Source: Octopus sinensis
Taxonomy: Eukaryota
Length of the DNA stretch: 64,000 bases
Direction of reading: 5' to 3'
Assembly: GCF_006345805.1 (NCBI RefSeq)
Contig: NC_043026.1
Span: 3,348,001 to 3,412,000, forward strand
In this document: one piece after another, positions 8,264-61,762 of the stretch
Numbering within the stretch: the first letter of the stretch is position 1
Layout: every line of letters begins with the position of its first letter
Notes under the pieces: generated by a model
Told to the model about the DNA's origin: nothing
The model's input: the letters and a program-made list of their open reading frames with translations, nothing else
Databases searched by the model: none
Translations under genes and position numbers: made by a program

Positions 8264-10332
8264 ATGAAGGAAAAAAACCTTCAGTATCTTCTCATTTTGT
8301 AATAATTTCCACAGATTTATCGAACTATTTGCTTTTGTAAATAGATCTTTAAAATTGTGTGTGTATCATTCACCTACGACAGTGGCTCAATATATTCTTA
8401 CGGTCAACTTTCAGTTACTCGCGTGCACTCCTAGTCTTCATTATTAATTCAATCCCCAACCAAATTGAATGCATTGTTTTTAGCAATGATGCTTTTAGCA
8501 AATAAGCCACATTTTTAGATCAAGTGATTGAAATTTAGTTCATTAAGCTAGCTCAAAATACGTGAGGTCAAAAATGAGAGACTAAGACAAAAATTGAATC
8601 TGAAAAAAATTATATATAATTAAAAAAAAGTAAAAAATAGTAAAATAAAATTTCGAAATGAACAAAAGAATTGATTTCTTTAAAGCTTGCAGCACTAGAT
8701 AGCAAAGCATTTTCTATTTACAGTTTTAAAAAAATATTTAAACAAATGAAAGCTGATGAACAAATTGAGTGCAAAATTTAGAAATGACCCTATAGCCTTT
8801 TTTTTTTTTTTGTAAAAAAAAAATTATGGGTCGTTATTATCAATTTTGCTTAAATTACTATTATGTGGGGTTTTTTAATTACAATATCAAATTTATGTGC
8901 AAACTGACAGACTAGTCTTTTCATTAAAATGGGAAATAAATAGCGCTTTGAGTATTTTAGTTCAAACTTTTAAGTAAAAATTAAAAAATTAAAAAATAAG
9001 AAAGGGATTTGTTATTTTAGTTTTAAAATTCTAACTTAAGCAGCAATATTTAAATGTTCTTCTTCTTATCCTCCGGTTACCAGGTCTGGTGACTCTCCCA
9101 TATTGCTAGAACAATTTCAACGGTAACTTTCTGACCGTCCTTAACCAACGATCCCATAAAATATAACAGCTCCCTAATTTTACTTAGTGTGTTTATTTTC
9201 GAACTTATGAACAACTGACCGATATAGAGTGCCCGAGATGGCAATAATAACGAAGTTATTATTGACTTGAAAAGTTACCCGATGAAAGCTGATAATAAAA
9301 GGATGAGAAAGTAAATAAGAATGTGAAAATAACAGGAAAATAAGAAAATTATATTTATCACTCCCAAAATACTATACAGGTATGATTCACTGCAGATGTT
9401 CATGAAGAACTCATGGAGACACGAGGAAGCACGGACACACCTTTGCATTCCGAATTTTCGTTCTGTAATTTCAGTGTGTTGCAAACCCTAACCCCGAACC
9501 AGATCAGGGGATTTCATAGCGTAGACAACAGACCCTGCGGTAGGCGGCACGCTAAAGTAGCATTGAAATTTCTTCTGTCAGTCGCAGTACCGGATGCATT
9601 ATTCTGAATTTATTAACATTTTGAGACAATGAAGATAGCACAATGGACTCCCGAATACAAAAAGATCAACAGAAAAACTCCAGCAATTAAGCGGAGACCT
9701 TATTTGAAGGTTTATCGAGATTGCTTCAAACGCTAAAGTGTTACTCACAATCAAAAATATATATACAAAGACATGTAGCATATTTTTCTTGTGTGTGTGT
9801 GTGTGTGTACAAAGGTGGACCCAAAAGTAATCGGAAACCTTCTCTGTGGGATCAGCCCTTTGTAGTTGGGGTTTCCGCCACTTGATGCAACCCTCAGGCA
9901 TCAGCCTGCCTGCCGGCATTATCCTCTGGGCTCATACTGCCACTTGCTACGTCTTTACTTTGCAATGCTTCTCCCTGTTCGTCGATTTTCGCTGTGGCTG
10001 AAAAAAAAAAGAACAGTGTGCTTCCGTGAAATTGTTTTCTGCTGGGAAAACGGTGGCTGAAACAGTTGTCATGCTTCAAACAGCTTACAAGGACGTTGCC
10101 ATGAGCAAAACACAGGTTTACGAGTGGTTTCCACGCTTTAGGGATGGTTACTTGTTGCTTGAAGACCAACCTCATTCAGGACTACCGTCGACCCGAACGA
10201 ATGAATAAAAAATATCATGAAAATTCCTGAACTGATCTTGGAGAACCGTCACCGAACAACTGACGTATTTTTTGATATTGTAAGAATTAGCACTTCCTTC
10301 TCAAAGCTTGGATTCGAAATCAGACCCAAGAA

Positions 10333-12196
10333 ATCTTCTCGGACGAAGAGCATAATCAACACCTTCACCTGCTTTTCGGACGACTACGTCAATTTGGAAT
10401 TGTTATCAACCCTACCAAATGTTTGTTCGGAGTTGCTTCCCTTCATTTTCTCGGCCATATAGTCGATAAAAATGGAATTCGTCCCCTTCCCGAGAAAGTC
10501 AAGGCCATCGTGGATTTTCCACCACCCACATCTCTCCGCAAATTAAGGGAATATCTCGGTCTAGCGAATTTCTATCGACGGTTCGTGCCCCACCTCGCTG
10601 AAATAGCGCAACCGCTCACGGATTTGCTACGTCAGCGAACCTGCAAAAATGCAGATATAGCTCTGACCGAAGATCAACTCGTTTCTTTCGCTGCCCTGAA
10701 AAAAGCGTTATCTAGCGCTACCATGTTGGTTTATCCAAAACCAGACGCCCCACGATGTTTACTCGTTGATGCATCCGATTCCGGAATCGGAGGTGTGCTA
10801 CAACAGCTTGTTGACGGTATATGGCAACCGTTGTCTTTCTTTTCTAAGCGGTTAAAACCCGCGGAAACCAAATACAGCACATTCAGTCGGGAATTATTGG
10901 CGGCATACCTGGCCGTTAAGCATTTCCGTCATATGCTAGAAGGTACCAATTTTGCCATATACACCGACCACAAGCCATTAGTATACGCATTTAACACCAA
11001 ACCGGATCGCCATTCGCCAAGAGAAATACGCCACCTCGACTTCATATCGCAGTACACGACGGATATACGCCACATCAAAGGGACGACCAACGTGGCAGCC
11101 GATGCACTTTCACGTGCGCAGATCAATGCTATCCACACCACGTCTACAATTGATCTGGCACGTATAGCAGCTGACCAGGAGAATGACGAAGAACTTCTAA
11201 AGCTCCGGAATTCGTCATCTCTGAAATTTCAGCATGTTCCGCTACCATCATCCACAGCCCATATTTGGTATGATATTTCCACTGGTTACCAACGCCCTTA
11301 TGTACCACAGAAATATCGTCGAGAAGTTTTCTCCGCTCTACATTCTCTGTCACATCCTGGTATTCGCTCCACTCAAAAGCTAATATCGACCCGTTTTGTG
11401 TGGACCAGTATCAACAAGGATATCAGAGAATGGACCAAGTGCTGTGTTGCGTGCCAAAAAGCGAAAATCCACCGGCACATAAAATCACCAATCGGTTCAT
11501 TTTCGCAGCCCGATGCACGATTTCAGCACGTTCACATTGATATTGTTGGACCCCTGCCACCTTCGCAGAACTATTCATATTTGCTAACTTGCGTAGATAG
11601 GTTCTCGCGATGGCCCGAAGCCTGGCCCCTATCTGATATATCAGCAGAAACGGTCGCTAAAACGCTGATATCACAATGGGTTTCGCGTTTTGGCACACCC
11701 GCAACAATTACCACCGACAGAGGACGTCAGTTCGATTCCCACCTTTTCACCGAGCTGACTCGTCTCCTCGGGTGTAAACACACCCGCACTACAGCTTACC
11801 ACCCTGCAGCAAATGGCATGGTGGAACGCTTTCACCGCCAACTCAAGGCATCTATAAAAGCTGCTCCAGACAGTTCTCACTGGTTGGAACATCTCCCTCT
11901 CATCCTCCTTGGGGTCATCCTCCTACAAGGTCATCAAAAGAGAACCCAAATATTTCGTCCTCGATATTGGAGGTAAACGAAATACGGTCTCGATTGATCG
12001 TTTAAAAAAAGCTTTCATCGAGGAGGACTTACATTCAGTCCCCTCTTTTCCTCAAACAGACTCGGCAACTCCAGCGAACACCACAGATTCTGCACAACCC
12101 CGACACACCAAATCAGGAAGAACAGTTCGATGGCCAGCAAGGTTTGTGCAAGTTTTTCGGGTAAGTTCTGAACTCCTAACGTATCCATCTTCCTAA
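10333..12196 (+). CDS. Truncated Gypsy pol: RT thumb, RNase H, integrase (frameshifting deletion near 11915)
   Basis: Open frame 10333-11976: [13 protein letters not shown], RNase [30 protein letters not shown], integrase HHCC, core [24 protein letters not shown]; tail [27 protein letters not shown] in another frame. Confidence 0.9.
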
Positions 12197-16738: not shown

Positions 16739-17469
16739 TTATAGATTCTAGTCAGGCAGCGAACTGGCAGAATGTTTAGCGGCATTTCGGCCGTCTTTAC
16801 GTTCTGAGTTCAAAGTCCGATAAAATCAGTCAGCTACTAGGGTCGAAGTAATCGACTTCCATAAACAATCTCGATTGTTCACAAATAGGATAGGAACTAT
16901 AACAAGTCCACTGCTACTTCAGTTTTTCAACCCTTGAAGAACTGATTGTAAAAATGAATAAATTCAACGGGATTTGAACGCAAAACGTTCACAGTATATT
17001 GCATTCTCATCAAACCAGATTTCTTTAATAACCTTGAATGGCTGTTGATTAGATTCGTCAAAAAATTCTTGAAATTACGTCATGAAGGTTGACGGCAGAC
17101 ATTATGACGTTGGATTCCTAAAGAAACAAACTGAAGGTTTTTCTCACTTCTACTTGGCTTTCTTTAGAATTGGTGCTTCAAGTTAGTCACGGGTTGATTT
17201 ATTATATTTCTTATTGGTTTATTGGCTTTGAATTAATCCCTGTCTTATTTTCATAATTTAACTGATAACTTAATCAACCAACTCTCTTTTCCTTTCTTTT
17301 CTCCTTTCGTCTTAAAGACTTTCCTTTCTCTATTTCCGTCTTTAACACTACTTCTCTTTGTATTTTTGCCTGCTTCATTTGGTCATTAATAACCGACTGA
17401 TTCAAATATAACATTTATCATTCATTTTATTACAATTGAATTCACTGCCTTTATACAATGTCTCTTTTG

Positions 17470-19420: not shown

Positions 19421-19769
19421 ATAAACCAGAATTCCAATTTTTTCTTTTCTTTTTTTCTTTGTTTTTCATTATTTATTTATTTGATTCCATTAATTCTTGT
19501 ATTTTAGGGTTTTTAAGCGAATAAATTGATGTCTTCATTGTTGTCAACAGGTACTGAGAGAACGTGTGACGTTCTGAGAGAACGTGTGACCTGCTTCATT
19601 TCCCCGGCAACACTTTCTTTAACCAAGTTCTTCACAGAGTAAACTCTGTCAGACTTCATTCCAATTTCACAGATGAAGCACCGCTTCAACGTTTTCCTTG
19701 TAAGAAATATCCCTTGATAAGCTACCCAAGCAATTCACTTTGAACGAACTTTTCGCAGAGGTGGTGAAT

Positions 19770-20318
19770 ATGAGTCATGAAGATGAATTAGGGAAGGACG
19801 AAACTATGGTGCAGGTGATAGATGAATTAAAAAGGGAGGAAAAGCAGATATCACAGGAGTTGAAGGAACTGAAGGAACTGGAAAAACAGATGAATAAAGA
19901 TCTAAAGGCAGGTATGAGCAAGTTAGAAGAGTTGGAAATACCCGAGCTAAAGGAACTGGAAACTCTGGAGCTGAAAGAACCTGAAGATCTGGCGATAGCT
20001 GAATTGGATGATCTAGAAGAACTGGAAGAACTGGAAGAAATGGAGATACCTGAGCTGAAGGAACTGAAGGAAGATTTAGAGGCAAGTGAGATGAAGGAAC
20101 TAGATCTCGAAATACCGGAGCTAAAGGAGCTGGAAGATCTGGAGATAAATGAGTTGAAAGATCTGGATGATCTGGAGATAAATGAGTTGAAAGACCTGGA
20201 TGATCTGGAGATACCTGAGCTGAAAGAACTGGAAGATTTGAAGATAATGGATGACACCGAACTGAATAAAGAGATAGAAGACTTGGAGTGTTTGAAGAAT
20301 TGGCGGCTCCACTGTTGA
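19770..20318 (+). CDS. Orphan acidic Leu/Glu-rich protein, 182 aa, with 11-aa repeats (LEIPELKELED / LEINELKDLDD)
   Basis: Uninterrupted 549-nt ORF; A at -3 of the ATG; repeat units differ largely at synonymous sites; candidate splice acceptors upstream (19550, 19672, 19758). No homology recognised. Confidence 0.65.
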   Translation: MSHEDELGKDETMVQVIDELKREEKQISQELKELKELEKQMNKDLKAGMSKLEELEIPELKELETLELKEPEDLAIAELDDLEELEELEEMEIPELKELKEDLEASEMKELDLEIPELKELEDLEINELKDLDDLEINELKDLDDLEIPELKELEDLKIMDDTELNKEIEDLECLKNWRLHC

Positions 20319-20612
20319 AAAAGAAATGTCAAATCTGTTTAAGTTTGCAATGGCAGTGTTAAAGTAATATCTTTGGTTTCATCCAAAGATTGGTTTCGTC
20401 AGAAAATATAATTCGGAATGTGAAAGTATATTCATTGTTCAAGATGTATTTCAGTCGATATAAAAGTTATAAAGATTAGATTTGCGCATAGCTGTTTGCT
20501 TATCATTTGCTATCATAACATATTATCTTTTTAACACACGTCATATGAATGTTTCTCACATGTATTTATAGACATTAGCTTAAATAATTTTGCAATTATT
20601 TGATTTCACTCC

Positions 20613-22016: not shown

Positions 22017-23332
22017 TTAATATTTAGCTTCAATCACACTCTGACATCTTCGACTGCATGGGGAAATTAAATTTTCAATTTCTTGCTGTGTGATCTTATT
22101 CCATTCTTCCCGAAGGGCATTCCATAATTGCTCGGTTATTGTAGGATTTCTGGCATTCGAACGTTCTCCTAGAATATTCCACACATTTTTAATAGAATTG
22201 AGATCTGGGCTTTGAGCAGACCAATCCATAGCAATAACTTTTTCAGCCTTGAGGAAGTTCATGACCACCTTAGCCTTGTGACATGGGGCATTGTCCTGCA
22301 TGAATATGGGTGGTCGCTTAGTTGAATTTCTTAGCACAGGCAAGACATGATCTTTTACAAGTTGTTTATAAACTCCTGCGTTTACCTTTCCATGTAATCG
22401 CACCAAAGGGCCCACAACATCTCCAGATATCATCCCCCAAACCATGACACTTCCTCCACCAAATTTAACACTAGTCTTAAGGCATTTAGGCGACAATTTT
22501 TCACCTACTTTTCTACGAACGTACCTTTTCCCATCTGAGCCAAATTACATAAACTTAGATTCATCACTGAAATGCACCGTTTGCCATTTTTCTTGAAACC
22601 ACAACACATGTTCGGTTGCAAAGGTAAGGCAACACTTTTTATTCTTGGAGCTGATCAGTGGCTACACTGCAGGTGCTCTTGCTTGTAGGTCATGTTCAAC
22701 TAAACAACGAGACACAGTTTTTCGAGATAAAGTTTTCTTCAATACAATGCTCATTTTCCGAGAAACAGCAGCAGCAGTTTTAAATCTGTCCTTTTTAACC
22801 AACTTTACCATAGCACGATCTTCTCTCTTGGTCGTTTTTCTTGGCCTACCTGTAGACTTTCTTGCTTCACACGAATACCATGAACAACATTTTTTGACTT
22901 GTTAACAATCTTTGCAATAGACCCAATACTTAAATTATCCTTCTTTCGAAGCTTAATAATCTGCTGACGAATTAGTAACGGAGTAAGTGGCATTATATTA
23001 AAGTGCACTGCAGATATTCTTACTAATGTTTAGTAAACGAACCGTCACGTAAACAAATTCAAAACATTTGAGTTCGCCGGTTAAATATACTAAAACACGG
23101 AGTAAAAGCAACCGTTCTGATCATTTTGGCTGCCATGGGTTTTGCAGTAAATCACTAAATCATCCATAACTTTTGTATTATCCTCTCAAATTACACCAAA
23201 ATCGCAGACAATAACAAATAATGTCGTATTTATTGTCTGTGAAAATTATAGAAGATAAAACAACTTTGATAAGAAATTATACTTACTTTTCTGATGAAAA
23301 CAATGCCGTTCTGAACATTTTGACCGTAACTG
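22017..23332 (-). mobile_element. Tc1-family transposon (DD34E type), decayed, only the 5' TIR retained
   Basis: Transposase relic 22017-22993: TGRPRKT, VHFSDESKF, GGGSVMVWG, FMQDNAPCH, SPDLNSIKNVW (E to K); 5' end TA|CAGTTACGGTC at 23332; internal direct repeat at ~23111 and ~23305. Confidence 0.88.
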
Positions 23333-31022: not shown

Positions 31023-33749
31023 TGGGTAGGTAAGGTAATCGAGGTAGTCAGAGTAAGTGACAGAGTAATTAAAATTAGATTAGTCCTTCACCATAGGACA
31101 GCTACCATCATCTCGGCATATGCCCCTCAACCAGGGCTACCGGAAGGACAAAAAGACCAATTCTATGACACCCTATTGCGGACTACCTCATTGACAAATG
31201 ACAGTGACCTTCTCTTCGTGGCAGGTGATTTCAATGGACATGTTGGACGACATGTCGGGGGCTTCCATGGCGTCCATGGAGGCTACGGTTTCGGCTCTCG
31301 TAATGAGGAGGGAACCAGGCTGCTGGAGTTCTGCGATGCAAATGACCTTATGGTCTGCAATACCAACTTCAGGAAACCCACCTCTCACCTAGTCACCTAC
31401 CGTTCTGGCAGATACACCAGCCAGATTGACTACATCCTTGCCAGAAAAAGGGAAAGAGGGCTGATTATAAATGCCAAAACCTTTCCAGGCGAAGAATGTA
31501 CTCCCCAACATAGATTAGTGGCTAGTGACTTCAGGATCAGAGCTAAATGGTTGCCCAGAAGAAGACCAGCTTGGAGGAGAAGGGTCTGGAAGCTTAAAGA
31601 TCCTGCAAATGGACAGAGATTTAGAGACATACTACTCTAGGCCTTTGACGAAATAGAAGGGGATATAGCTTCACTTAATGTGGAAGACAACTGGAGATTC
31701 CTTCGGGACAATCTGCTGACAGCCACTGACCAGATCTGTGGATGGAGCAAAGTACCATCTCGACCCAGAGTAACATGGTGTGGAACACTGTAGTTGACAG
31801 GGCTATTAGACAAAAGAGACAGGCTTGGAAGGACTGGAAGAACGGTGGTAGCAGGGAATTGTATCAGACAGCCAGAAGGGAAGCTAGGAGACAGGTTTAT
31901 CTCGCCAGAGGGGAAGCAGATAAGAAAAAATTTGCCAATGTTCTGAGCCGTGAGGATGAAAGACTTGAGGTATTTCGTGTTGCAAGACAGTGTGTAAGAG
32001 AGAATCGTGATGTGGTAGGAGAGAAGTGTGTTCGCATGGATGATGGTTCACTTGCGCTAAATGAGGATGCAAAGAGAGAGGTTTGGAGATGCCACTATGA
32101 AGGGTTGCTGAATAAAGAAAATGAATGGGATAAAGAGAGTCTGCCAAATGTTGACCCAACAGAGGGACCAGCTATCCGAGTTGATAGTTCCGTGGTAGCT
32201 AAGGCAATTAGAAGCATGAAGACAGGGAAAGCCCCAGGCCCATCAGGAATTACTGCAGAGATGCTCAAAATATCTGGCAGTGTCAGCTGTAACCTAGTCA
32301 CCCGTATAGTCAACCAGGTGATACACGAAGGAGTCATACCCAATGACTGGTGTAGCAGCATACTAGTCAACTGCTACAAAGGTAAAGGTGATGCCCTGGA
32401 TATAAATAATTACAGAGGTATCAAGCTGTTGGATCAGGTAATGAAGGTTACGGAGAGGGTCATAGCCCAACTAATTAGAGAGAGAGTTAGTTTAGATGAG
32501 ATGCAGTTTGGGTTCGTGCCAGGGAAAAGCACCACTGATGCTATATTCCTGGTAAGGCTACTGCAGGAGAAATACCTAGCCAAAGATAAGCCCCTGTACC
32601 TGGCTTTCGTTGACATGGAGAAAGCCTTTGATAGGGTCCCCCGATCCCTCATCTGGTGGTCAATGAGGAAACTAGGGATAGATGAATGGCTGGTGAGGGC
32701 TGTGCAAGCCATGTACAGAGATGCCGTAAGTAAGGTTAGGGTTGGCAAATGTACACAGAAGAATTCAAAGTAGAGGTTGGGGTCCACCAGGGTTCAGTAC
32801 TCAGCCCCCTCCTATTATCATAGTCCTCCAGGCAATTGTGGAGGAATTCAAGACAGGCTGCCCCTGGGAGCTCCTCTATGCTGACGACCTCGCTCTAATT
32901 GCTGAATCACTATCAGAACTGGAGCAGAAGTTCCAGATGTGGAAGGAGGGTTAGAATCGAGGGGCCTTAGAGTCAACCTAGCTAAAACCAAAGTACTAAT
33001 AAGTAGAAAGGTAGACAATCCACAAATATCCTCAGGAAGATGGCCCTGCTCGATCTGTAGAAAAGGTGTAGGTAGAAACTCTATAAGATGTACCCAGTGT
33101 AAGCTATGGACACATAAGAGGTGCAGCAATGTCAAAGGTAGGCTAACTGGGAAGATAGTTTTTGTATGTGGCAGATGCTCGGGAGCATTGACCTCCGAAA
33201 ATCTGCAGAAACACAACTTCCGTCACTTTCCGGGGGGAAAAGCTAGAAGTAGTTGATAGCTCCCAATATCTAGGTGACCAAGTCAGTAGTGGGGGTGGGT
33301 GCGCTGAAAGTGTAACTGCTAGAATAAGAATAGCCTGGGCAAAGTTTAGGGAGCTCTTACCTCTGCTGGTGACTAAAGCCTCTCGCTCAGAGTAAAAGGC
33401 AGACTGTATGATGCATGTGTACGAACAGCTATGCTACATGGCAGTGAAACATGGGCCGTGACTGCTGAGGACATGCGTAAGCTCGTGAGGAATGAAGCCA
33501 GTATGCTCCGATGGATGTGTAATGTCAGTGTACTTACACGACAGAGCGTTAGTACCTTGAGAGAAATGTTGTACCTAAGAAGCATCAGTTGTGGTGTGCA
33601 AGAGAGACGATTGCGCTGGTATGGTCATGTGGCGAGAATGTGGATGAAGATAGGTGTGGGAGAAAGTGCGAATCCCTAGCAGTTGAGGGAACCCGTGGAA
33701 GAGGTAGACCCAGGAAAACCTGGGACGAGGTGGTGAAGCACGACCTTCG
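31023..33749 (+). mobile_element. RTE-clade LINE ORF2 (APE endonuclease, RT, PHD-like finger), 5'-truncated, 3' end lost in gap
   Basis: EN: SAYAPQ, VAGDFNGHVG, QIDYIL, PQHRLV; RT: KAPGPSG, NYRGIKLL, QFGFVPGKSTTDAIF, FVDMEKAFDRVP, LLYADDL; C-terminus RRLRWYGHV, RGRGRPRKTW; one in-frame stop and several single-base frameshifts. Confidence 0.93.
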
Positions 33750-34963: not shown

Positions 34964-35038
34964 GTGAGTATTTCATCAGTAGACGTTCAGTATTTGACTT
35001 TTCGATTGGCTGTGTTTCTCCAATTTTTTATGTATCAG

Positions 35039-35862
35039 AGATGTCTATGAATTGTACAAGATTTGGCTGCTATTTCTAGCTATGGAAGAGAGTTATCTAT
35101 GATTTAAGCGAGATCTGGTTGCTGTTTCTAGTTATGGAAGAGAAATCACTATGTTTCGTGCCAGATTTGGCTGCTATTTCTAGCAATGAAGAGATGTCCA
35201 TAATTTGTGCAAGATTTGGCTGCTATTTCTAGCTATGGAAGATAGTTATCTATGATTTAAGCGAGATCTGGTTGCTGTTTCTAGTTATGGAAGAGAAATC
35301 ACTATGTTTCGTGCCAGATTTGGCTGCTATTTCTAGCTATGGAAGTGAAATGTCTATGATTAGTGCAATATCTGGTTGCTATTTCTAGCTATGGATGAGA
35401 GATTTCTATTATTTGTGCAAGATTTGGCTGCTATTTCTAGCTATGGATGAGAGATGTCTATTATTTGTGCGATATCTGGCTGCTATTTCTAGCAATGGAA
35501 GAGATGTCCATAATTTGTGCAAGATTTGGCTGCTATTTCTAGCTATGGAAGTGAAATGTCTATGTTAGTTCGATATCTGGCTGCTATTTCTAGCTATGGA
35601 AGAGAGATGTCCATAATTTGTGCGAGATTTGGCTGCTATTTCTAGCTATGGATGAGAGATGTCTATTATTTGTGCGAGATTTGGCTGCTATTTCTAGCTA
35701 TGGAAGAGAAATGTCTATGATTAGTGCGATATCTGGCTGCTATTTCTAGCTATGGATGAGAGATGTCTATTATTTGTGCGAGATTTGGCTGCTATTTCTA
35801 GCTATGGAAGAGAAATGTCTATGATTTGTGCGAGATTTGGCTGCTATTTCTAGCTATGGAAG
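35039..35862 (+). repeat. 52-bp tandem array, ~16 diverged copies, in putative intron 1 of ZNF gene 1
   Basis: Unit ATTTGTGCGAGATTTGGCTGCTATTTCTAGCTATGGAAGAGAGATGTCTATG; period 52 (e.g. 35641 to 35693). Confidence 0.95.
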
Positions 35863-36867
35863 CCACATCCTCCATCGTTGCTGTGTTTGTTGTGTTTTGA
35901 GAAATATTCTCAAATACACCCCAACCGCTGAAATGTTGAGAAACCAATACTTTATTATTATTATTTATCGAATGTTTCTTGATATAACTACCGATGTGTG
36001 CTCACTCAACTAGCAATTTGATTCGTCATAACTTCGGGAAAAATGGATATTTTTGGTAATGAAATTTTCTAGAAATACTTTTCAGACAATGTGGATTACG
36101 AATATGTTGGAATTTGTTGTGAAAAAAATATAATTGGGAGAAAGGGTTACATGTTTTATGTCTTCGACTTTGTTTCCTCATATATTTTAACGACACAACT
36201 GTTCCCCACATCTGTCTTGTTATGAGGTGATGCAGATCAATCACAGGGAATATTGTGTGTCGCATGTATCTACGTACAACTCTTTATCTGTCTACCTCTG
36301 TCTCTTATGCTTTTCTCTTTGCGAGCTTTCACCTTCTATATATTTACCACATTCTCTCTCACTCTTTCTCTCTATATGTATATCTCTCGTGCTGATATTT
36401 GTATATGTCTTGAATCTGCAATTTTTAAGTAGTTTCTGTGTCTTACACTGTTGTTTCTTTATTATTTCAGGACATATCAAATGACATTGGGGTAACTGAA
36501 GATATTTCAAAATTTTTATCGTGTTTTGAAGACAAAGAAAATGCTATTGAAAGCAGATATATAATACGATTTCTGTAAAGTTATCATGGCATTCCAGTGC
36601 AATATATGCTCTGTTATTATTATCGAACGTTCCTTGCATTTCTGACTACAGTGTCAACAAAACGAATTTGTGTGCAAATTAAACTTGGATAAATTGAGAA
36701 AAAAGTTCTGAGACAAAGGTAACATTGGACAGAAATACAGTGATTGAAATATTGGCAAGGTATAACCTATAAGAACAAAATAAAAAATATATGTTTGCGT
36801 ATATATATTTATATATTTATCGTCATCATCATTATTATTATTATATATTGATTTGAAAAGAAAAATT

Positions 36868-38190
36868 ATGGATAAAAGCGAGAAACATACCGAATTGATT
36901 TTACCTGAAGACATGATAAAAGAGAGAAGTAAATTATCCTATGACTGTGATATCTGTGAAAAGACATTCTCTCTAAAAGGTAATTTGACTAAACACAAAC
37001 GTATTCATACAGGAGAGAAGCCATATCATTGTGATATCTGTGGTAAATCTTTCTCTGGGAGTACTGCCCTAACAATACACATACGTATTCATACAGGAGA
37101 GAAACCATATCGCTGTAATATCTGTGACAAATCATTTTCTCAAAATATTGACTTAAATAAGCACATTCGTATTCATACTGGGGAGAAGCCATATCATTGT
37201 GATATCTGTGGTAAATCATTCTCTCAAAGTGCTGTCTTAACTACACACAAGCGTGTTCATACGGGAGAGAAGCCATATCACTGTGATATCTGTGGTAAAT
37301 CATTCTCTCGAAGTTATCACTTGACTTCTCACAAACGTATTCATTCAGGAGAGAAGCCCTATTGTTGTGATATCTGTGGTAATTCATTCTCTGAAAGTAG
37401 TGTCTTAACTAAACACAAGCGTATTCATACAGCAGAGAAGCCATATCATTGTGATATCTGTGATAAATCATTCTCTGTAAGTAGTTACTTACGTAAACAT
37501 AAGCATATCCATACAGGAGAGAAGCCATTTCACTGTGATGTCTGTGACAAATCATTCTCTGCAAATAGTGACTTAACAAGACACAAATTTGTTCATACAG
37601 GAGAGAAACCATATCATTGTGATGTCTGTGGTAAATCATTCTCTGTAAGTAGTTACTTGGCTGAGCACAAAAGTTTTCATACAGAGGAAAGGCAATATCT
37701 CTGTGATATCTGTGGTAAATCATTCTCCAAATTTGGTACATTAACTAGACACATTCGTAGTCATACAGGAGAGAAACCATTTCATTGTAATATTTGTAGT
37801 AAATCATTCTCTGGAAGTAGCGACTTTACTAAACACAAACGTATTCATTCAGGCGAAAAGCCATTTCACTGTGATATTTGTGATAAATCATTCTCGCAAA
37901 GTTATAACTTGACTTCTCACAAACGTATTCATACAGGAGAGAAGCCACATCACTGTGATATCTGTGGTAAATCATTCTCTGCAAGTAGTAACTTAATTTC
38001 TCACAAACGTATCCATACAGGTGAAAAGCCATATGCCTGTGATATCTGTAGCAAATCATTCTCTCAAAGTAGTGACTTAACTAAACACAAACGTATTCAT
38101 ATGGGAGAGAAGGCATATCACTGTGACATTTGTGGTAAATCTTTCTCTGAAAGTCATAAGTTAAATAAACATACATCTACACATATGTAA
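36868..38190 (+). CDS. C2H2 zinc-finger protein (ZNF gene 1), 440 aa, 15 tandem fingers, no KRAB/BTB/SCAN domain
   Basis: Intact ORF of CxxC-x12-H-x3-H units with TGEKP linkers; first ATG at 36868; acceptor TTATTATTTCAG ending 36470. Confidence 0.95.
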
Positions 38191-42480: not shown

Positions 42481-43852
42481 ATGTAGGAAACCGATGTACG
42501 CACAAACATACAAATGATTTAATATTTCGCTTAGACATAGTGAAACTGATAACCTGGAGTAGAACTCAAGATACAAAAAGTCCAGAACACAATGTTATAT
42601 GAGCGTAGAGCAGTAACAGAAAACAAAGAAATGACACTGGAAAATCTAAATGTTATCTGATGAGCAACTAAGAGTTCACCACATCTATAGCACAAACAAT
42701 TGTAAGCTAATGAAGTCTTTACACAACATTCAGATTTTCCAGTGTCATCTCTTTATGTGTGTGGGTGTGATCATAATCATATCGCTTAACATCCATTTTC
42801 AGTGCATGCATGGGCAGAACATGTGACAGAAGCCAGCCAGGTAGAAGACTACTCCAGGTTACTATGTCTGTTTTGGCAGGGTTTTTATGGCTGGATGCTT
42901 TTTACGTGACACCAGCAGTGGCAGGATCACCAAGTAACTTGCAAGACAAGGAATTTTGAGAGGGGCAGGGGCATTTGAAGAGGGAACTTGTGTCAGAGGA
43001 TGAAAGGTTAGAGTGTAACCGAGAGGCAGAGACAGAAACAGGGGTTTTGCTGTAATGGAGGAAATGATCTGGAGTCAGATGACGAAAGGTGAGAGAAACT
43101 TTGTCACCACACCATTCAGAAAGCTACAGATCAGTGTGATGAAAAATATTTTGTGGGACGCAAACATCAACTGCTTAAAAAAAAAAGAATAAATGAAAAA
43201 ACAAACAAACAAACATGTATTAGACTTTATTAATTATAGCTTTTCCCAAATATAACAATATTAGTTTCAACATAGTTTCAGATCAATACGAATTCAAAAG
43301 CGAGAAGAAATTGCCTTTATTAAAAATATCCCAGACATAAATTATCTCACCTGTGAAAATATAGTTGTTGTGAAATAAAATGTAGTATTGGGAGGCAGTT
43401 GCCACACACTGTTGTATCTCCTTCTTTATATGAATACATATTGATACAGATGAGCAATTTTTTATCTTATAGAGGAATTTTAACTAAAATCAATATCACT
43501 GTATGCTATAGGAGATATCTAAAGTGAGTTGCATCAAGAAGGGTCAACCAGCTGAAAATGACAGCTAAAAATACAGTGCCTCAACGTGTCAGTTATTGCT
43601 GAGATTAAAACCCACAAGGCTATTCACACTATAGGTAAAGGTCAAAATATTCGTTGTTGCTATGAAATTTTACATTGATATAGTTATACTTGTATATGAA
43701 TATATACATGTCTGCATCAGTGGCTACTTTCAGTGAAAGATTTACCACATACATCAGTGACATGGTTTCTCTCCTCTAAGAATATGTTTGCATTTAGCTA
43801 ATTGAAGACTTCCAGAGAATGATGTGCCATTGATATCACAATGGGATGGCTT

Positions 43853-44927
<1,075 letters not shown>

Positions 44928-45944: not shown

Positions 45945-46287
45945 ATTGGAAAATCAATTCTGAATTTATAATACAAAAATAATAATAATGATGATGATGA
46001 TAATAAAACGAAAATACAAAATTAACCCCTTTTATGAAAGGAGATAAATTCTACCGAAGTCCTCTCCCCACCCCTAGGAAAAGATTTTACCCACAAATTT
46101 CGTTATAATCGTAATGTATAAAATTTCATTTAAAAAAAATAAAACCATTTTCCTAAAAGTTATTAGGGAAAAACTCGGATCTTGTGAATTTTCCGAAGTC
46201 CTCTCCCCATCCCGCCGTTGCTTTCCACGCATTTTTCCTTTCATTTTCGTTTCCTGCTCCCCATTTTTTAATACCCGTTGCACTATT

Positions 46288-47339
46288 CATAGACACCTCT
46301 CTTCCATAGCTAGAAATAGCAGCCAAATCTCGCACAAATCATAGACACCTCTCTTCCATAACTAGAAATAGCAGCCAAATCTCGCACAAATCATAGACCC
46401 CTCTCTTCCATAGCTAGAAATAGCAGCCAAATCTCGCACAAATCATAGACACCATCTCTTTCATAGCTAGAAATAGCAGCCAAATCTCGCACAAATCATA
46501 GACACCTCTCTTCCATAGCTAGAAATAGCAGCCAAATCTTGCACAAATCATAGACACCTCTCTTCCATAGCTAGAAATAGCAGCCAAATCTCGCACAAAT
46601 CATAGACACCTCTCTTCCATAGCTAGAAATAGCTGCCAAATCTCGCACAAATCATAGACACACCTCTCTTCCATAGCTAGAAATAGCAGCCAAATCTCGC
46701 ACAAATCATAGACACCTCTCTTCCATAGCTAGAAATAGCAGCCAAATCTCGCACAAATCATATAGACACCTCTCTTCCATAGCTAGAAATAGCAGCCAAA
46801 TCTCGCACAATCATAGACACCTCTCTTTCATAGCTAGAAATAGCAGCCAAATCTCGCACAAATCATAGACACCTCTCTTCCATAGCTAGAATAGCAGCCA
46901 AATCTTGCACAAATCATAGACACCTCTCTTCCATAGCTAGAAATAGCAGCCAAATCTCGCACAAATCATAGACACCTCTCTTCCATAGCTAGAAATAGCT
47001 GCCAAATCTCGCACAAATCATAGACACCTCTCTTCCATAGCTAGAAATAGCAGCCAAATCTCGCACAAATCATAGACACCTCTCTTCCATAGCTAGAAAT
47101 AGCAGCCAAATCTCGCACAAATCATATAGACACCTCTCTTCCATAGCTAGAAATAGCAGCCAAATCTCGCACAAATCATAGACATCTCTCTTTCATAGCT
47201 AGAAATAGCAGCTAAATCTCGCACAAATCATAGACACCTCTCTTCCATAGCTAGAGATAGCAGCCAAATCTCGCACAAATCATAGACACCTCTCTTCCAT
47301 AGCTAGAAATAGCAGCCAAATCCCGCGCAAATCATAGAC
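46288..47339 (-). repeat. 52-bp tandem array, ~20 homogeneous copies, in putative intron 1 of ZNF gene 2
   Basis: CATAGACACCTCTCTTCCATAGCTAGAAATAGCAGCCAAATCTCGCACAAAT at 46288, 46340, 46392 and onward; reverse complement of the 35039-35862 unit. Confidence 0.97.
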
Positions 47340-47444
47340 ATCATTCATTCATAAAAGATAGAAAAAACACAAAGAATCGAGTCGTCAAATATCGAAAGTC
47401 TACAGAATTAAAAAGACTGAATATTTTCCTTGTTTAATACTTAC

Positions 47445-49675: not shown

Positions 49676-51596
49676 AATATAGGGCGTAACAAATATCAGA
49701 AAATCAAAAAAAAAATGTGTGTAATAGGTGTAAAACAACTTCCTATGAACGAATATGAAAAAAAAAATTCGCGCACGCGAAAGGGGGGTGGGAGAGAGGC
49801 CTCGGAAAATTCACATCGGGAAGTTCCGAAAGCGTCTGAGGAGCTGACCCGGGCACCAAAACAAAAAAAAAATAGTGTAATATGTGTAAAACAACTTGCT
49901 CTAAACGAATATGACAAAAAAAAATGCGCTCTCGCGAAAGAGGGGTGGGGGAGAGGCCTCGGAATATTTATATCGGGAATTTCCGAAAGCGTCTGAACCG
50001 GGCACAAAAACAAAAACAAAAACAGCGTAATAGGTGTAAAACAACTTGCTCTAAACGACTATCATGAAAAAAATGCGCGCTCGCGAAAGGGGGGTGGGGG
50101 AGAGGCTTCGGAAATTTCACATCTTCAGTCCACGGCCTTTAAACTAAGAAAAAATAGTGTAATTGGTGTAAAACTACTTGTTCTAAACGAGTATCAAGAA
50201 CACACACTCACACATGAATCATAAACTCCGTATTTCGCAAAAAAAAAAATAATAAAGAGAAGAAATTCTGGAAAAAGTGAAGAAATGTTGGATCTCCGCC
50301 ATGTGAATCAAAATACGTGTCAGAAACATCTTGAAATACTACAGAAATTATGTTACGAAAATGATAATGTATACATACCTCTTTGAGTGGTCCATCGATA
50401 ACGATGATAAAGAAATGAGTTGGATTTGAACTCAGAATATTGACTAACACAACTACATACTACAAGACTCAAAATATTCAGCCAAGTCACCACCCTTTAA
50501 CTAGCAATAATAATAACATCAATAACATAACAGCCAAAAGATTTATTTGTTCTGAAAATAACAATCATAGTAAATAAATATGTTCTTTAATATTCACATT
50601 CATGTGCACAGTTAAACACACTTACATACAAACAGTCACGCATGCATAATACAGAACGGAACACATAAATGAAGGATGCATTACTTAGTATATATTACAT
50701 CGAGAGAATTTTGATTAATAAGTCAAATATGCAAATTATAAAGATAATTAATTGCTTTACTAAACAGTGTTGTAAAGGTGAAAAAATAAATTTGGGAAAA
50801 AAATACACGCCAAAACTAATTAATAAAGGATAATTAGGGAAGGATTGACACAAAATAATTATTTTTTCTGTCTCTTTTTTTCTGATAAATGCATCTTAAT
50901 AAGTGAGAAGAATTGCATATATCTGAACTATTTCAAAGAAAAGCATAAATTTAATGTTTAAAATAGCTTTAACCAAGGAATGAGATCCAACATTTCTTCA
51001 CTTTTTCCAGAATTTCTTCTCTTTATTTTTTTTTTTTTTGCGAAATACGGAGTTTATGATTCATGTGTGAGTGTGTGTTCTTGATACTCGTTTAGAACAA
51101 GTAGTTTTACACCAATTACACTATTTTTTCTTAGTTTAAAGGCCGTGGACTGAAGATGTGAAATTTCCGAAGCCTCTCCCCCACCCCCCTTTCGCGAGCG
51201 CGCATTTTTTTCATGATAGTCGTTTAGAGCAAGTTGTTTTACACCTATTACGCTGTTTTTGTTTTTGTGCCCGGTTCAGACGCTTTCGGAAATTCCCGAT
51301 ATAAATATTCCGAGGCCTCTCCCCCACCCCTCTTTCGCGAGAGCGCATTTTTTTTTGTCATATTCGTTTAGAGCAAGTTGTTTTACACATATTACACTAT
51401 TTTTTTTTTGTTTTGGTGCCCGGGTCAGCTCCTCAGACGCTTTCGGAACTTCCCGATGTGAATTTTCCGAGGCCTCTCCCCCACCCCCCTTTCGCGTGCG
51501 CGAATTTTTTTTTTCATATTCGTTCATAGGAAGTTGTTTTACACCTATTACACACATTTTTTTTTTGATTTTCTGATATTTGTTACGCCCTATATT
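49676..51596. mobile_element. Foldback-type element: ~620-bp near-identical modular TIRs around a 685-bp AT-rich spacer
   Basis: 49676-50296 is the reverse complement of 50982-51596; arms contain ~3.3 modules of ~140-155 bp; TATGTAAAATC flanks both sides (49661-49671 and 51597-51607). Confidence 0.85.
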
Positions 51597-54809: not shown

Positions 54810-55925
54810 ATGGAAAAGAGTGAGAAAATAAAGAAACTGATTTTTCCAGAAAATAGAGAAAAAGGGAGCCAAAAATTGTCACATGAGTGTGATGTCTGTA
54901 AAAAGTCTTTCTCTCAAAAGAGCAGCTTGAATACGCACAAACGTATTCATAGAGGAGAGAAGCCATTTCATTGTGACATTTGTGATAAATCATTCTCTCA
55001 GAGTTGTAACTTGAGTACACACAAACGTATTCATACAGGAGAGAAGCCATTTCACTGTAATGTCTGTAGTAGGTCATTCTCTAACCACAATGCTTTAAAT
55101 TCTCATATACGTGTTCATACAGGGGAGAAGCCATTTCACTGTGACACTTGTGGTAAATCATTCTCTATAAATGTTTCACTGACTAAACACAAACGTATTC
55201 ATACTGGAGAGAAGCCATATCACTGTGATGTCTGTGGTAAATCATTCACTCAAAATGGTAATTTATCTATACACAAGCAAATTCATACAGGAGAGAAGCC
55301 ATTTCACTGTGATGTCTGTGGTACATCATTCTCTCAGCGGAGTTCTTTAGATTCTCACAAGCGTTTTCATACAGGAGAGAAGCCATTTCACTGTGACATC
55401 TGTGACAAATCATTCCGGGGAAAAGACAGCTTGACCAAACACCGACGTATTCATATAGGAGATAAGCCATATGACTGTGACATTTGTGGTATATCATTCC
55501 CTCAGAAAGGTAGCTTGACTTCACACAAACGTATTCATACTGGAGAAAAGCCGTTTCACTGTAATGTCTGCAGTGCATCATTCTCTCAGCAAAGTGCCTT
55601 GGAGTCTCACATACGTGTTCATACAGGAGAGAAGCCATTTCACTGTGACATCTGTGGTAAATCTTTCCCTCAAAGTAATAACTTGACTATACACCAACTT
55701 GTTCATACAGGAGAGAAACCGTTTCACTGTGACACTTGTGGTAAATCATTCTCTCAAAAAAGTAACTTGACTAGGCACATACGTGTTCATACAGCAGAGA
55801 AGCCCTATCACTGTGATATCTGTGGTACATCATTCTCAGACCAAAGTGTTTTAAAATGTCACAAACGTAATCATGCCAGCGAGAGGCCTTATCACTGTGG
55901 TGTACTCGTATACATGCTCATATAG
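54810..55925 (+). CDS. C2H2 zinc-finger protein (ZNF gene 3), 371 aa, 12 fingers
   Basis: Intact ORF with TGEKP-linked fingers; N-terminus MEKSEK..LIFPE..EK..KLSH homologous to genes 1 and 2; acceptor ending 54451. Confidence 0.93.
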   Translation: MEKSEKIKKLIFPENREKGSQKLSHECDVCKKSFSQKSSLNTHKRIHRGEKPFHCDICDKSFSQSCNLSTHKRIHTGEKPFHCNVCSRSFSNHNALNSHIRVHTGEKPFHCDTCGKSFSINVSLTKHKRIHTGEKPYHCDVCGKSFTQNGNLSIHKQIHTGEKPFHCDVCGTSFSQRSSLDSHKRFHTGEKPFHCDICDKSFRGKDSLTKHRRIHIGDKPYDCDICGISFPQKGSLTSHKRIHTGEKPFHCNVCSASFSQQSALESHIRVHTGEKPFHCDICGKSFPQSNNLTIHQLVHTGEKPFHCDTCGKSFSQKSNLTRHIRVHTAEKPYHCDICGTSFSDQSVLKCHKRNHASERPYHCGVLVYMLI

Positions 55926-56620
55926 GATAGAAACCATATCATTTGTAGTAAATCCTTCTCTCAAAGTAGTGCTTAACTTCTCACAAACATTTTCATTCAA
56001 GAGAGACACCATATTCCTGTAACATCTCTTCTCTTTCATCAGTGCTTTAACTCATGAAGGTATTCATACAAAAGCCATGTTACTGTGACATCATCATCAT
56101 CATTTAACGTCTGCTTTTCATGCTAGCATGGGTTGGACGGTTCGACCGGGAATCTGGGAAGCCAGAAGGCTGCACCAGGCTCCAGTCTGATCTGGCAGTG
56201 TTTTTACCGCTGGATGCCTTCCTAATGCCAACCACTCCGTGAGTGTAGTGGGTGCTTTTTACGTGCCAGGGGAAGCTGGCAACGGCCATGATCGGATTGG
56301 TGCTTTTTACGTGCCACCGGCACGGAAGCCAGTCTAGGCATCTGTAACAAATATTTCTCTTTTAATAGTAAGCTAATTTATTGAGACACCCTATTCCTGT
56401 GATGTCTGTGATAAATAATTCTCCCTAAATGACAAATCAGAAACTCACAGACATTTTCACACAGAAGAGAAACCATATCACAATGATATCTGTGGGGAAA
56501 TCATTCACTATGAGTTCTCGCTTATCTGATCACAGACATATCCATACAAGAAGTCATTCACTCAAAATAGCAAATTACCTTCTCACAAACGAGATCATGG
56601 CAGGGCTGAAGTGTTCCCAC
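55926..56620 (+). pseudogene. Decayed zinc-finger units downstream of the ZNF gene 3 stop, interrupted by a family C element
   Basis: Finger-like DNA (GAAACCATATCA..AAATCATTC..CACAAAC) with stops and indels at 55926-56090 and 56380-56620. Confidence 0.7.
56090..56340 (-). mobile_element. Family C retroelement
   Basis: CATCATCATCATCATTTAACGTC..GGATGCCTTCCTAATGCCAACC..TTTTTACGTGCC twice. Confidence 0.75.
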
Positions 56621-56664
56621 TGATATTTGTGCTAAAACATTCCCTGTAAGTGACGACTTAACCC

Positions 56665-56880
56665 TTTACTATACTCTTTACTCTTTTACTTGTTTCAGTC
56701 ATTTGACTGTGGCCATGCTGGAGCACTGCCTTTAGTCGAGCAAATTGACCCTGGGACTTTGTAAGCCCAGTACTTATTCTATCGGTCTCTTTTGCCGAAC
56801 CGCTAAGTGACGGGGACGTAAACACACCAGCATCGGTTGTCAAGCAATGCTAGGGGACAAACACAGACACACAAACATAT

Positions 56881-56911
<31 letters not shown>

Positions 56912-57083
56912 CATATATACGACAGGCTTCTTTCAGTTTCCATCTACCAAATCCACTCACAAGGCATTGGTCGGCCCAAGGCTATAGTAGAAGACACTTG
57001 CCCAAGATTCCACGCAGTGGGACTGAACCTGGAACCATGTGGTTGGTGAGCAAGCTACTTACCACACAGCCACTCCTGCGCCC
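56665..57083 (-). mobile_element. SINE family A, full length
   Basis: Reverse complement of 1582-1984. Confidence 0.85.
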
Positions 57084-57303
57084 ATGTAGTTCATTCTGTC
57101 CAATGTGATGTTTATTCACGTTATTTTCAATTTGTCCTGCATTAACTCACAGCTTTCAAGTGATGACGATGTGGTTGAGTATTTTTAGAATAACATTGTA
57201 GGGTAGGTGTAAGAGGCCAACTCTGGTTAGTTTGAAAATAAAAGAGGTAGCATATTTGGGCCAGTTGTGGCTGGTTTAAATGCTAAACGGTTAACACTAG
57301 AAC

Positions 57304-57792: not shown

Positions 57793-57804
57793 CCCTCAGT
57801 GTAG

Positions 57805-58340
57805 TAACTTGATTACACACAAACGTATTCATACTAGAGAGAAGTCTTACCACTGTGATGTCTGCAGCACATCATTCTCTGACCAAAGTGCCTTAAAGTC
57901 TTACGTCTTCATACAGGAGAGAAGCCTTATCACTGTGATGTCTGTGGTACATCATTCTCTGACCGAAGCGCTTTAAGTTCTCACATACATGTTTATACAG
58001 GGGAAAGGCCGTTTCACTGTGAAATCTGTGGCAAGTCATTCTCCGAAAGTGCTACATTGACTAGACATACACGTATTCATACAGGAGAGAAGCCATATCA
58101 TTGTGATACCTGTGGTACATCATTCTCTCAGCGAAGTGCCTTAAATTGTCACATTTGTGGTAAATCATTCTCTCAAAGTAATATCATGACTACACACAAA
58201 CGTGTCCATACAGGATAGAAGCCATATCACTGTAATATCTGTGGTAAATCATTCTATCAAAGTAGTACTTAAACTTCTCACAAACATGTTCATTCAAGAG
58301 AGACATATTCCTGTAATATCTGTGGTAAATCATTAACTTC
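57805..58340 (+). pseudogene. Zinc-finger pseudogene fragment (~6 decayed fingers)
   Basis: [54 protein letters not shown] and others, with deletions and a GGATAG stop. Confidence 0.8.
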
Positions 58341-59400: not shown

Positions 59401-61762
59401 AATTTCCAGGGTGGAGAGAAAACATGCTTTCAACAAGTTGGCATCTTGTATATATAATAAAGTAGCAGTAATGCTCGTCATTGAGTTACTTTTACTACTT
59501 CTGGGCAGCCACGTTCAAAGTATTATTATATATATAATTTACTCCTCCTGTATGTGTGTATTTTTATAATAAAAAATATGTAATAATTGAATTAGAAAAA
59601 AGATAAATTTTATGCATGAACTTCTGTTTGTTTGTTACATGACAATAATAAAAGAATTTTATGATTTATTGTATTTATCAATCCAGTAATGGCAATTATT
59701 GATAATAAAAATAATGAAATTATTGTATACAGTGCTCGGGTGCACCACAACTTGTCAAAAGTGCGTATAAAGCATATGCAGTAATGTACAAATGTCTGGA
59801 AAGCGACCAGTGTATGAGTCAGATACATGCTTGCGTGTGTATGGAGGGGAGAAAATCAGGTGTAGTGTTGGCGAATCTCAGGAAGCATGGAAGTTTTGAA
59901 GGATGCAGTGCTCCGACAATAATAATAACAACCCTCCCTTTCCTATTTTATATCCTTCATATGTCCTTCTCTTTTACTTTGTTCTCTCTTTCCCTGTCTC
60001 CTTTTAAATGCCAACTTTAACATTTCCCTTCTTTTATATAAACATATATTATGTATGTGTGTGTGTTATATATTGTGTACGTGTATATGTATATTATGTA
60101 TGTGTATATATGTATATACTTTTATTCGTGTACTTGTTTCACTCATAAAAAAATAATGAAATTATTGTATACAGTGCTCAGGTGCACCACAACTTGTCAT
60201 AAAGTACGTATAAAGCATATGCAGTAATGTACAAATGTCTGGGAAGTGAACAATGTATGAGTCAGATACATGCTTGCGTGTGTATGGAGGGGAGAAAATC
60301 AGGTGTAGTGTTGGCGAATCTCAGGAAGCATGGAAGTTTTGAAGGATGCAGTGCTCCGACAATAATAATAACAACCCTCCCTTTCCTATTTTATATCCTT
60401 CATATGTCCTTCTCTTTTACTTTGTTCTCTCTTTCCCTGTCTCCTTTTAAATGCCAACTTTAACATTTCCCTTCTTTTATATAAACATATATTATGTATG
60501 TGTGTGTGTTATATATTGTGTACGTGTATATGTATATTATGTATGTGTATATATGTATATACTTTTATTCGTGTACTTGTTTCACTCATAAAAAAATAAT
60601 GAAATTATTGTATACAGTGCTCAGGTGCACCACAACTTGTCATAAAGTACGTATAAAGCATATGCAGTAATGTACAAATGTCTGGGAAGTGAACAGTGTA
60701 TGAGTCAGATACATGCTTGTGTGTCATGAAAGAAAAAAACATGCAATAATTGAAGTAGGAGAAAGATGAATTTCTGTTTGTTTATTAAACGATAACAATA
60801 AGTGACTTGCACATGTTATTATTTATCAATGCAGTAATGGCAATTATATAATCTATTTATATAAAATTCTTTGCCTGTCTGTTCCCAATGCATTCTCAGA
60901 CAGCTCAACCAAATTAAATCAAATTTTACACGATAATAGTATCAGACCCTGTGAGTGTTAACATGTTACTTTTTTTGGGGGGTTCATTTGCATTAAAACA
61001 ATATAACATTGGCAATGGTTTGGCATTTCATGTCAAAAGTGAAAGAATAACATCTCTATACATCATCATCATTTAGTGTCCGCTTTCCATGCTAGCATGG
61101 GTTGGACGGTTCAACTGGGGTCTGGGAAGCCAGAAGGCTGCACCAGGCCCAGTCTGATATGGCAATGTTTCTACGGTTGGATGCCCTTCCTAACGCCAAC
61201 CACTCCGTGAGTGTAGTGGGTGCTTTTTACGTGCCACCGGCACAGGTGCCAGACGGGACTGGCAAACGGCCACGGACAGATGGTGCTTTTTACGTGCCAC
61301 CGGCACGGAGGCCAGTCAGGGCGACGCTGGCAACAGCCATGTTCTGATGGTGCTTTTTACGTACCACCGGCACAGAGGCCAGTCGGGGCAGCGCTGGCAA
61401 CGGCCACATTCAGATGGTTCTCTTACGTACCACCTGCACTGGTACCACAGCTGCAATTTCCATTTCCTTTCCATATATATATAAGTTAAGTTAAGTTGGC
61501 TCAAAAAGCAAAAAGCTAGGCCATGTAGGGGGACATGGAGTTATGTACAGGGGTGTTCATGCAAAGAATTCAGGCCATTTCTGGTCAAGAGAGACCTTCA
61601 ACCGAGCGGTCTTCGGCATCTTCACTATCTCGTCCGGCAGCTTATTCCACGGATCTGCAACCCGGACGATTGATAAAAATGGTAAGATAAAAGAAAGAAA
61701 GAGACCTCGATATTATGTAAATAGAGGAAATTATCTGTAAATGTAATATGTGACAATTATTC

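Follow-up and report, generated by a model that had tools for sequence, protein, structure and literature searches.

Proteins built from 11- or 22-residue repeats that form amphipathic helices punctuated by proline include the exchangeable apolipoproteins, the perilipins and the group-3 LEA proteins. Here we describe an open reading frame (ORF) at positions 19770-20318 on the forward strand of a 64,000-nucleotide (nt) stretch of Octopus sinensis DNA, which we call the window. It lies on chromosome CM016888.1 (assembly GCA_006345805.1), within a cluster of C2H2 zinc-finger genes that is rich in remnants of short interspersed nuclear elements and other transposable elements. The predicted product appears analogous to the proline-punctuated proteins in its 11-residue period, its helical prediction, the proline that opens its units and the 3-3-3-2 spacing of its hydrophobic residues. 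It differs from them in having no sequence or Pfam similarity, and in being extremely acidic with one lysine per unit, in contrast to their zwitterionic class-A helix. Its leucine spacing, LxxLxxLxI(N/P), also recalls that of leucine-rich repeat proteins. By sequence, however, the ORF is a new, unannotated and structurally altered member of an Octopus gene family that is already annotated and is uncharacterised.

An Octopus family of proteins with an acidic, predicted helical body

The ORF runs intact from ATG 19770 to the TGA at 20316-20318, giving 182 codons and a stop. An earlier note, made from the sequence alone, had reported this stop-free frame of 182 residues, an aspartate plus glutamate content of about 38% and the lack of phenylalanine and tyrosine, and all of this is borne out by the composition (26.9% Glu and 11.0% Asp, together 37.9%, with 20.9% Leu, 11.5% Lys and neither Phe nor Tyr). 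The product is hyper-acidic, with a predicted isoelectric point (pI) of 4.1 and a net charge of approximately -46. When the region was subjected to 5000 dinucleotide-preserving shuffles the sense frame stayed open in none of them, and the other two sense frames contain 31 and 16 stops. The openness of the frame is not explained by composition alone.

A search of 5.8 billion proteins, in which 8000 candidates were scored, returned a single match to the ORF, the Octopus vulgaris protein CAI9742523.1 (181 residues, annotated as 'hypothetical' and referred to below as P0001), at E = 1.8e-4. Because low-complexity word matches swamped this search, we relied on a HMMER profile search run exhaustively against 1.84 billion representative proteins. 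In pairwise comparison the ORF matches P0001 with E = 3e-10 and 2e-9, and P0001 used as a query identifies its Octopus bimaculoides orthologue, LOC106872922 (P0002, 197 residues), with 86% identity. The profile search added O. vulgaris CAI9743666.1 (P0003, E = 1.1e-14) and O. bimaculoides XP_052833563.1 (P0004, E = 1.7e-9). In all it gave four homologous protein clusters, every one of them from Octopus and representing at least three paralogue lineages. At E <= 1e-3 the only matches outside Octopus among these representatives were two weak ones, to an unnamed ENA sequence and to a protein from the fungus Mycena, which are probably spurious. The suggestion of the earlier note that the gene is lineage-restricted therefore agrees with the profile search, whereas its description of the gene as an orphan does not survive the finding of these paralogues.

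None of the family members has a significant Pfam match. The PDB gave no significant match by sequence or by profile, and the best Foldseek match to the model of P0002 had E = 3.9. P0004 carries the automatic name 'golgin subfamily A member 6-like protein 7', but the protein showed neither a golgin nor a GRIP domain, and the name is a compositional label. A literature search on LOC106872922 found no papers, and a broader one yielded only background work on novel genes of cephalopods.

P0001 and P0002 are syntenic orthologues that align over 179 codons with no insertion or deletion, and their rates of synonymous (dS) and non-synonymous (dN) substitution are 0.245 and 0.067, a ratio (omega) of 0.27. 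On this sequence evidence the family consists of genuine coding genes. Both annotated O. bimaculoides members are single-exon genes, and in O. vulgaris one exon of P0001 holds all but the first few codons, although the gene model spans 6.3 kb. The members are also linked on the chromosome: P0002 and P0004 are separated by 150 kb on a single O. bimaculoides chromosome. The window corresponds by synteny to O. vulgaris OX597841.1, and P0001 is found on that chromosome too, approximately 1.3 Mb from the window's syntenic position. Copies of the family, in the window and at P0001 and P0002, sit within C2H2 zinc-finger clusters.

Two details of the annotated members were noted in passing. The genomic ORF of CAI9742523.1 (locus L001, 15704-15745, OX597841.1) has a TGA at ancestral codon 14 when compared with the O. 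bimaculoides orthologue, and the annotated model bypasses it by means of a mini-exon 5.7 kb upstream. The ORF of XP_052833563.1 (locus L005, 9839-10762) continues for 54 codons further upstream to an in-frame ATG. Since this extension encodes the conserved N-terminal motif of the family, the RefSeq N-terminus of the protein is probably too short.

A tblastn comparison of a family protein with the window locus gave E = 4e-19, with matches in two frames and a contiguous region of homology. Members of the family share a plan in which a basic head of some 45 residues, hardly any of them acidic (pI approximately 12), is followed by a disordered linker and an acidic body. Conserved motifs in the head are MxPLxP..TP, RFIS, GPxP.ST and QRFPxKK.LFIxE. 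The body is made up of three helices, two of them long and the C-terminal one short, and the proline of the motif D-I-E-M-P-E-L-K-E-L-E marks the start of the second. The AlphaFold model of P0002 is all-helical, with confidently predicted helices at residues 73-133, 136-175 and 178-196, and its helical body has a predicted local distance difference test score (pLDDT) above 90.

The window ORF is the counterpart of residues ~66-181 in the family protein. Its conserved first-helix region (19794-19964, approximately residues 9-65) ends in the motif LEELEIPELKELE, which reads LDDIEMPELKELE in the relatives, and the first 65-75 residues of the ORF are 49-54% identical to P0001 and P0002, including the first acidic helix, …LVQVLKRQEKQLEQEL…LEKQLNQDLK…. 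The C-terminal tail is likewise conserved. The last 25 residues, MDDTELNKEIEDLECLKNWRLHC in the window (20247-20318) and MEDPELVKEIEYLENMKSWQFHV in P0001 and P0002, are 52-60% identical and the stop codons coincide. The pattern M-E/D-D-x-E-L-x-K-E-I-E-x-L-E-x-x-K-x-W-x-x-H is present in the window ORF, with the stop one codon past the aligned H-x, and the P0001/P0002 tail, …PELVKEIEYLENxKSWxFH, ends at the same codon. P0003 and P0004 are more distant members; both are without the C-terminal KEIExLExxKxW tail, and the segments duplicated in them differ from those duplicated in the window copy. Taken together, the sequence comparisons indicate that the ORF is a diverged paralogue in a small, low-copy, essentially single-exon gene family restricted to Octopus.

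Repeat growth in the body and breakage of the head

Between these conserved ends the window copy departs from its relatives. P0001 and P0002 have a basic segment, LERLYDLEWHxKQKKQLK…VEM, that has gone from the window ORF, and some 90 residues of amplified acidic 11-mers stand there; the pI of the relatives is 7.8, compared with 4.1 for the window ORF. In the family a single motif, (D/E)-x-(P/H)-E-L-(K/M)-(E/Q)-L-E, is followed by L..L.DL(E/D)WHxKQK, whereas the window ORF has six copies of the motif and no WHxKQK. The lineage-specific expansion, with the motif E-I/M-P-E-L-K-E-L-E, occupies positions 19932-20237, in place of the paralogues' LERLYDLEWHxKQKKQL... segment. Four tandem 33-nt units lie in the ORF frame, LEIPELKELED at 20106, LEINELKDLDD at 20139 and again at 20172, and LEIPELKELED at 20205, the earlier note having reported four such units in a row from 20106, and older, dispersed units lie at 19932 and 20040. 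Tandem Repeats Finder also detects the 33-nt period, placing 3.9 copies with 85% matches at 20118-20247. The helical body of P0004 contains an internal duplication too, so repeat growth recurs in the family.

The AlphaFold model of the window ORF contains helix and coil and no strands (pLDDT 74), and the product is best described, from this model, as a predicted proline-kinked amphipathic helical polyanion. The amphipathic helix was one of the two folds that the earlier note had proposed, and it fits the all-helical models of both the window ORF and P0002.

The family's basic head is broken in the window. The ancestral start, at 19529, now opens an upstream ORF of 37 codons, the remnant MSSLLSTGTERTCDVLRERVTCFISPATLSLTKFFTE* (19529-19642), which is closed by a TAA at 19640 and contains a 20-nt direct duplication at 19554-19593. 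A remnant of the family N-terminal motif, VLHRVNSVRLHSNFTDEAPLQRFPCKK, follows at 19627-19707. It is 56% identical to P0002 over 32 residues and is read in a frame that is neither that of the ancestral start codon nor that of the main ORF. The head is spread over three frames because of two deletions: a loss of 10 nt relative to all four paralogues (19622-19632, the exact place depending on the alignment) causes the first frameshift, and a loss of 1 nt relative to P0001 and P0002 (19729-19731, where a spacer of 50 nt stands against 51 nt) causes the second and puts the sequence into the frame of the main ORF. The basic N-terminal region that is characteristic of the family is thus not in frame with the body here. 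A second short upstream ORF (19673-19717; ATG 19673, 14 codons, TGA 19715) lies between the ancestral start and ATG 19770. All of these features are on the forward strand.

The window head has neither GPxP nor LFIxE, which are invariant in the other four members, and its similarity to the outgroup paralogues is 10-12 points below that of P0001 and P0002. Because of these losses and this reduced similarity, the sequence suggests decay of the head next to a body that remained open. In the paralogues the basic, acid-free head that the window copy is missing looks, from its sequence, like a targeting or nucleic-acid-binding region. Any activity of the window copy would be expected to run via the helices that it has in common with them.

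Selection on the body and the competing explanations

The earlier note had drawn attention to units that keep their amino acids while the codons vary, and each of the codon variants that it listed is present. A minimum of 11 synonymous and 10 non-synonymous changes separates the six repeat units, against an expected synonymous share of 23% (binomial P = 0.0035), and when these changes are read in the two shifted frames only 4/20 and 1/21 are synonymous. The units at 20106 and 20205 encode one peptide and differ by six synonymous and no non-synonymous changes. In the parts of the ORF that can be aligned with P0001 and P0002, the proportions of non-synonymous (pN) and synonymous (pS) sites that differ are 0.27 and 0.68-0.76, with synonymous sites saturated and omega at most approximately 0.19. 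Because of this saturation we take the window copy to be an old paralogue rather than an orthologue, and saturation together with the divergence implies that the duplication long predates the split between O. vulgaris and O. bimaculoides. At the nucleotide level, mismatches at codon positions 1, 2 and 3 number 21, 11 and 29 in the ORF, counted against P0002, and 7, 4 and 9 in the tail, whereas in the broken head they are flat (27, 23 and 31). All insertions and deletions relative to the paralogues within the ORF are multiples of three, both frameshifts falling in the 240-nt head, and none of the 96 single-base routes to a stop codon in the ORF has been taken. The signature of protein-level selection proposed in the earlier note is therefore seen both among the repeats and in comparison with the paralogues. 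As judged from these sequence patterns, the body evolved under protein-level constraint in the window lineage, also after the repeats arose; the statistical contrast between head and body is suggestive only.

Several explanations of the locus were weighed against this background. The earlier note had proposed that the ORF might be the last exon of a larger gene, and an acceptor-like sequence, ttttcgcag|AG (approximately 19749-19759), does lie 11 nt upstream of ATG 19770, where splicing to it would bypass the broken head. A precedent exists in the O. vulgaris P0001 model, in which the 5' mini-exon is joined so as to avoid the premature stop and one exon encodes nearly all of the protein, and the upstream block common to the paralogues lies 2.3 kb away. 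Against this, both annotated O. bimaculoides members have a single exon, and because the frame ahead of 19770 is closed by a TAA at 19701, such an exon could contribute no more than untranslated sequence or a handful of codons. In the ordinary sense of the term the ORF is not a last exon: it makes up the 3' two-thirds of an essentially single-exon family ORF, and the 5' third sits immediately before it, in other frames and interrupted by a stop. We regard a spliced terminal exon as improbable. The half leucine-rich repeat that the earlier note had offered as its other fold, and with it a leucine-rich-repeat solenoid, is very hard to credit. The LxxLxxLxIN pattern is real and Pfam does return LRR_EndoS (E = 0.0044) and LRR_Zer-1 (E = 0.014), but at 17.7 and 16 bits these matches fall well under the gathering thresholds of 27.9 and 27. 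Leucine-rich repeat units run to 20-30 residues whereas the one here has 11, AlphaFold predicts helices only, and the homologous region of the paralogues is confidently helical, with pLDDT above 90. Nor does the ORF look like the ORF1 or gag-like coiled coil of a multicopy retroelement, or another part of a transposable element, a possibility that the earlier note had itself raised. Acidic coiled coils do occur in the ORF1 proteins of long interspersed nuclear elements, and the surroundings contain Ty3/gypsy pol, DDE_3 and RVT_1 remnants. The family, however, is low-copy by protein clusters, with one copy per locus and no reverse-transcriptase or endonuclease ORF adjoining the copies in the window or at loci L001, L002 and L005, and it has no gag or ORF1 Pfam match. 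Nucleotide homology among the paralogous loci takes in the ORF and a unique upstream block and ends at about the stop codon (~20322 in the window), and the constrained, syntenic pair P0001 and P0002 argues in the same direction. The retroelement explanation is largely refuted, and we consider its chances to be slight in the extreme.

The weightier question is whether the frame is still coding or dead. We lean, by a narrow judgement, towards the ORF being the surviving body of a diverged family paralogue whose shortened frame is still maintained, and the A at -3 of ATG 19770 is one point in its favour. A number of observations weigh against a maintained frame. Two frameshifts and a premature TAA in the ancestral 5' third leave the family ORF without a usable start and would a priori mark a pseudogene, and the two upstream ORFs, starting at 19529 and 19673, precede ATG 19770. 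The 700 nt downstream of the stop hold neither AATAAA nor ATTAAA, a hexamer that the paralogues carry at +19 to +290. In the searched collection O. sinensis, O. vulgaris and O. bimaculoides have no protein that matches the ORF exactly or almost exactly, and so we regard the copy as unannotated in all three genomes. The repeat test concerns approximately 21 changes only, and transition bias would weaken its P value to about 0.03; the pN and pS values against the paralogues mostly reflect history preceding any inactivation; and the chance that both frameshifts would fall in the head is approximately 0.09, which makes for a weak test. The competing explanation, to which we assign a substantial probability that nevertheless falls short of even, is that of a young pseudogene. 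The gene would have been full-length and functional for most of its history and then recently inactivated by the 10-nt and 1-nt deletions, the signatures of selection would record past function, and the 182-codon frame would be open only for lack of time. The N-terminal remnant retains 56% identity to P0002, so the breakage of the head need not be old, and the premature TGA in O. vulgaris P0001 indicates that family members do decay. Recent inactivation fits less well with a head that has diverged faster and lost invariant motifs next to a body that keeps its codon-position pattern, has no disabling change and has only frame-preserving insertions and deletions. At a neutral head divergence of 0.05-0.1, approximately 1.6-3.2 new stops, and frameshifts besides, would be expected in the body, and none is seen.

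Three changes are evident in the window copy. In-frame duplication raised the motif to six copies, the tandem 33-nt units accounting for four, and these took the place of the basic LEWHxKQKK segment. The units then diverged mostly at synonymous sites, which shows purifying selection on the peptide. The 10-nt and 1-nt deletions severed the ancestral start and N-terminal region, leaving the 37-codon stub. Translation of the remainder from ATG 19770 would yield a 182-residue, proline-kinked helical polyanion of net charge -46 that lacks the basic head. Should the shortened frame indeed be maintained, such a product may act through its paralogue-like helices, associating helix to helix with the paralogues' partners or with the paralogues, and the amplified acidic repeats could serve as a charged spacer. 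It is also conceivable, though we think it rather unlikely, that the decapitated copy has been neofunctionalised, losing its presequence-like basic head and gaining the polyanionic proline-kinked repeat, to become a soluble decoy or antagonist that pairs, by way of the conserved helices, with the full-length paralogues or their partners. The ion-binding and nucleic-acid-mimic roles put forward in the earlier note are speculative.

Genomic setting and meaning for the family

The non-coding block common to the paralogues lies at 16958-17274 on the forward strand of the window and matches 9586-9782 of locus L002 and 8656-9334 of locus L005 (O. bimaculoides CM046628.1), where it occupies the proximal upstream region. 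In the window it is set approximately 2.3 kb from the gene by repeats. An argument for a pseudogene from displacement of the promoter was considered and dropped, since the block of O. vulgaris P0001 is similarly displaced, by about 2 kb. A serine-rich ORF of 185 residues on the reverse strand (19775-20332) was dismissed as a gene. It is a by-product of the purine-rich sense strand and stands outside the gene, and antisense frames stayed open in 2.4% of the shuffles. Rfam gave no match over 15-25 kb of the window.

The counterpart of the window in O. vulgaris, on OX597841.1 (GCA_951406725.2), is 98.7-99.2% identical to it, and the O. sinensis record CM016888.1 matches it at 100% over 5.4 kb. 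The nearest annotated genes to the ORF are zinc-finger genes more than 16 kb away, and exact-protein look-ups of the ORFs neighbouring it gave no matches. The zinc-finger cluster is visible as 84-nt periodic arrays at 36853-38190 (forward), 43724-44924 (reverse), 54810-55925 (forward) and 57803-58334, and the protein encoded by the 371-residue ORF at 54810-55925 is annotated in identical form in O. sinensis and O. vulgaris. The statement in the earlier note that nearly every other long ORF in the region is a broken transposable element was overstated, as the C2H2 genes at 36853-38190 and 54810-55925 are intact. Elements of that kind include a Ty3/gypsy-type pol remnant (10423-11976, forward) with RNase H and both zinc-binding and core domains of integrase, whose best database relative is only 63% identical and for which the search gave no annotated copy from an octopus, a DDE_3 (Tc1/mariner-like) transposase fragment (22017-22496, reverse) and an RVT_1 reverse-transcriptase fragment (31742-32773, forward).

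Arrays of a 52-nt minisatellite at 35037-35862 and 46280-47340 are reverse complements of each other and border zinc-finger arrays of opposite orientation, a layout that suggests an inverted segmental duplication relating approximately 35-38 kb to 43.7-47.3 kb. Two arrays of a 157-nt repeat (49700-50123 and 51155-51572) are also inverted, about 1 kb apart, and a 443-nt tandem repeat at 59702-60724 has 2.3 copies that are 98% identical. A run of N at approximately 33.65-33.85 kb marks an assembly gap and produces runs of X in ORFs on both strands. Some 950 nt at 56321-57269 of O. sinensis are missing from O. vulgaris (locus L004) between blocks that are 99% identical, an insertion or deletion between the sister species.

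For the annotation of the family, the analysis flags the unannotated O. sinensis member, the probably truncated N-terminus of XP_052833563.1 and the premature stop behind the spliced model of CAI9742523.1. The animal group to which the octopuses belong is noted for novel genes. If the copy described here is a pseudogene it is an ordinary one, and the balance of synonymous and non-synonymous changes in its repeats records past selection and not present function. If the shortened frame is still used, it would offer a compact example of change in a lineage-restricted gene family, in which one copy lost its basic, possibly targeting, head by frameshift and grew an acidic repeat domain by in-frame duplication of 33-nt units. 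Were the copy in addition to have been neofunctionalised, it would be a recently born regulator that arose by in-frame amplification of a motif inside an octopus zinc-finger cluster.

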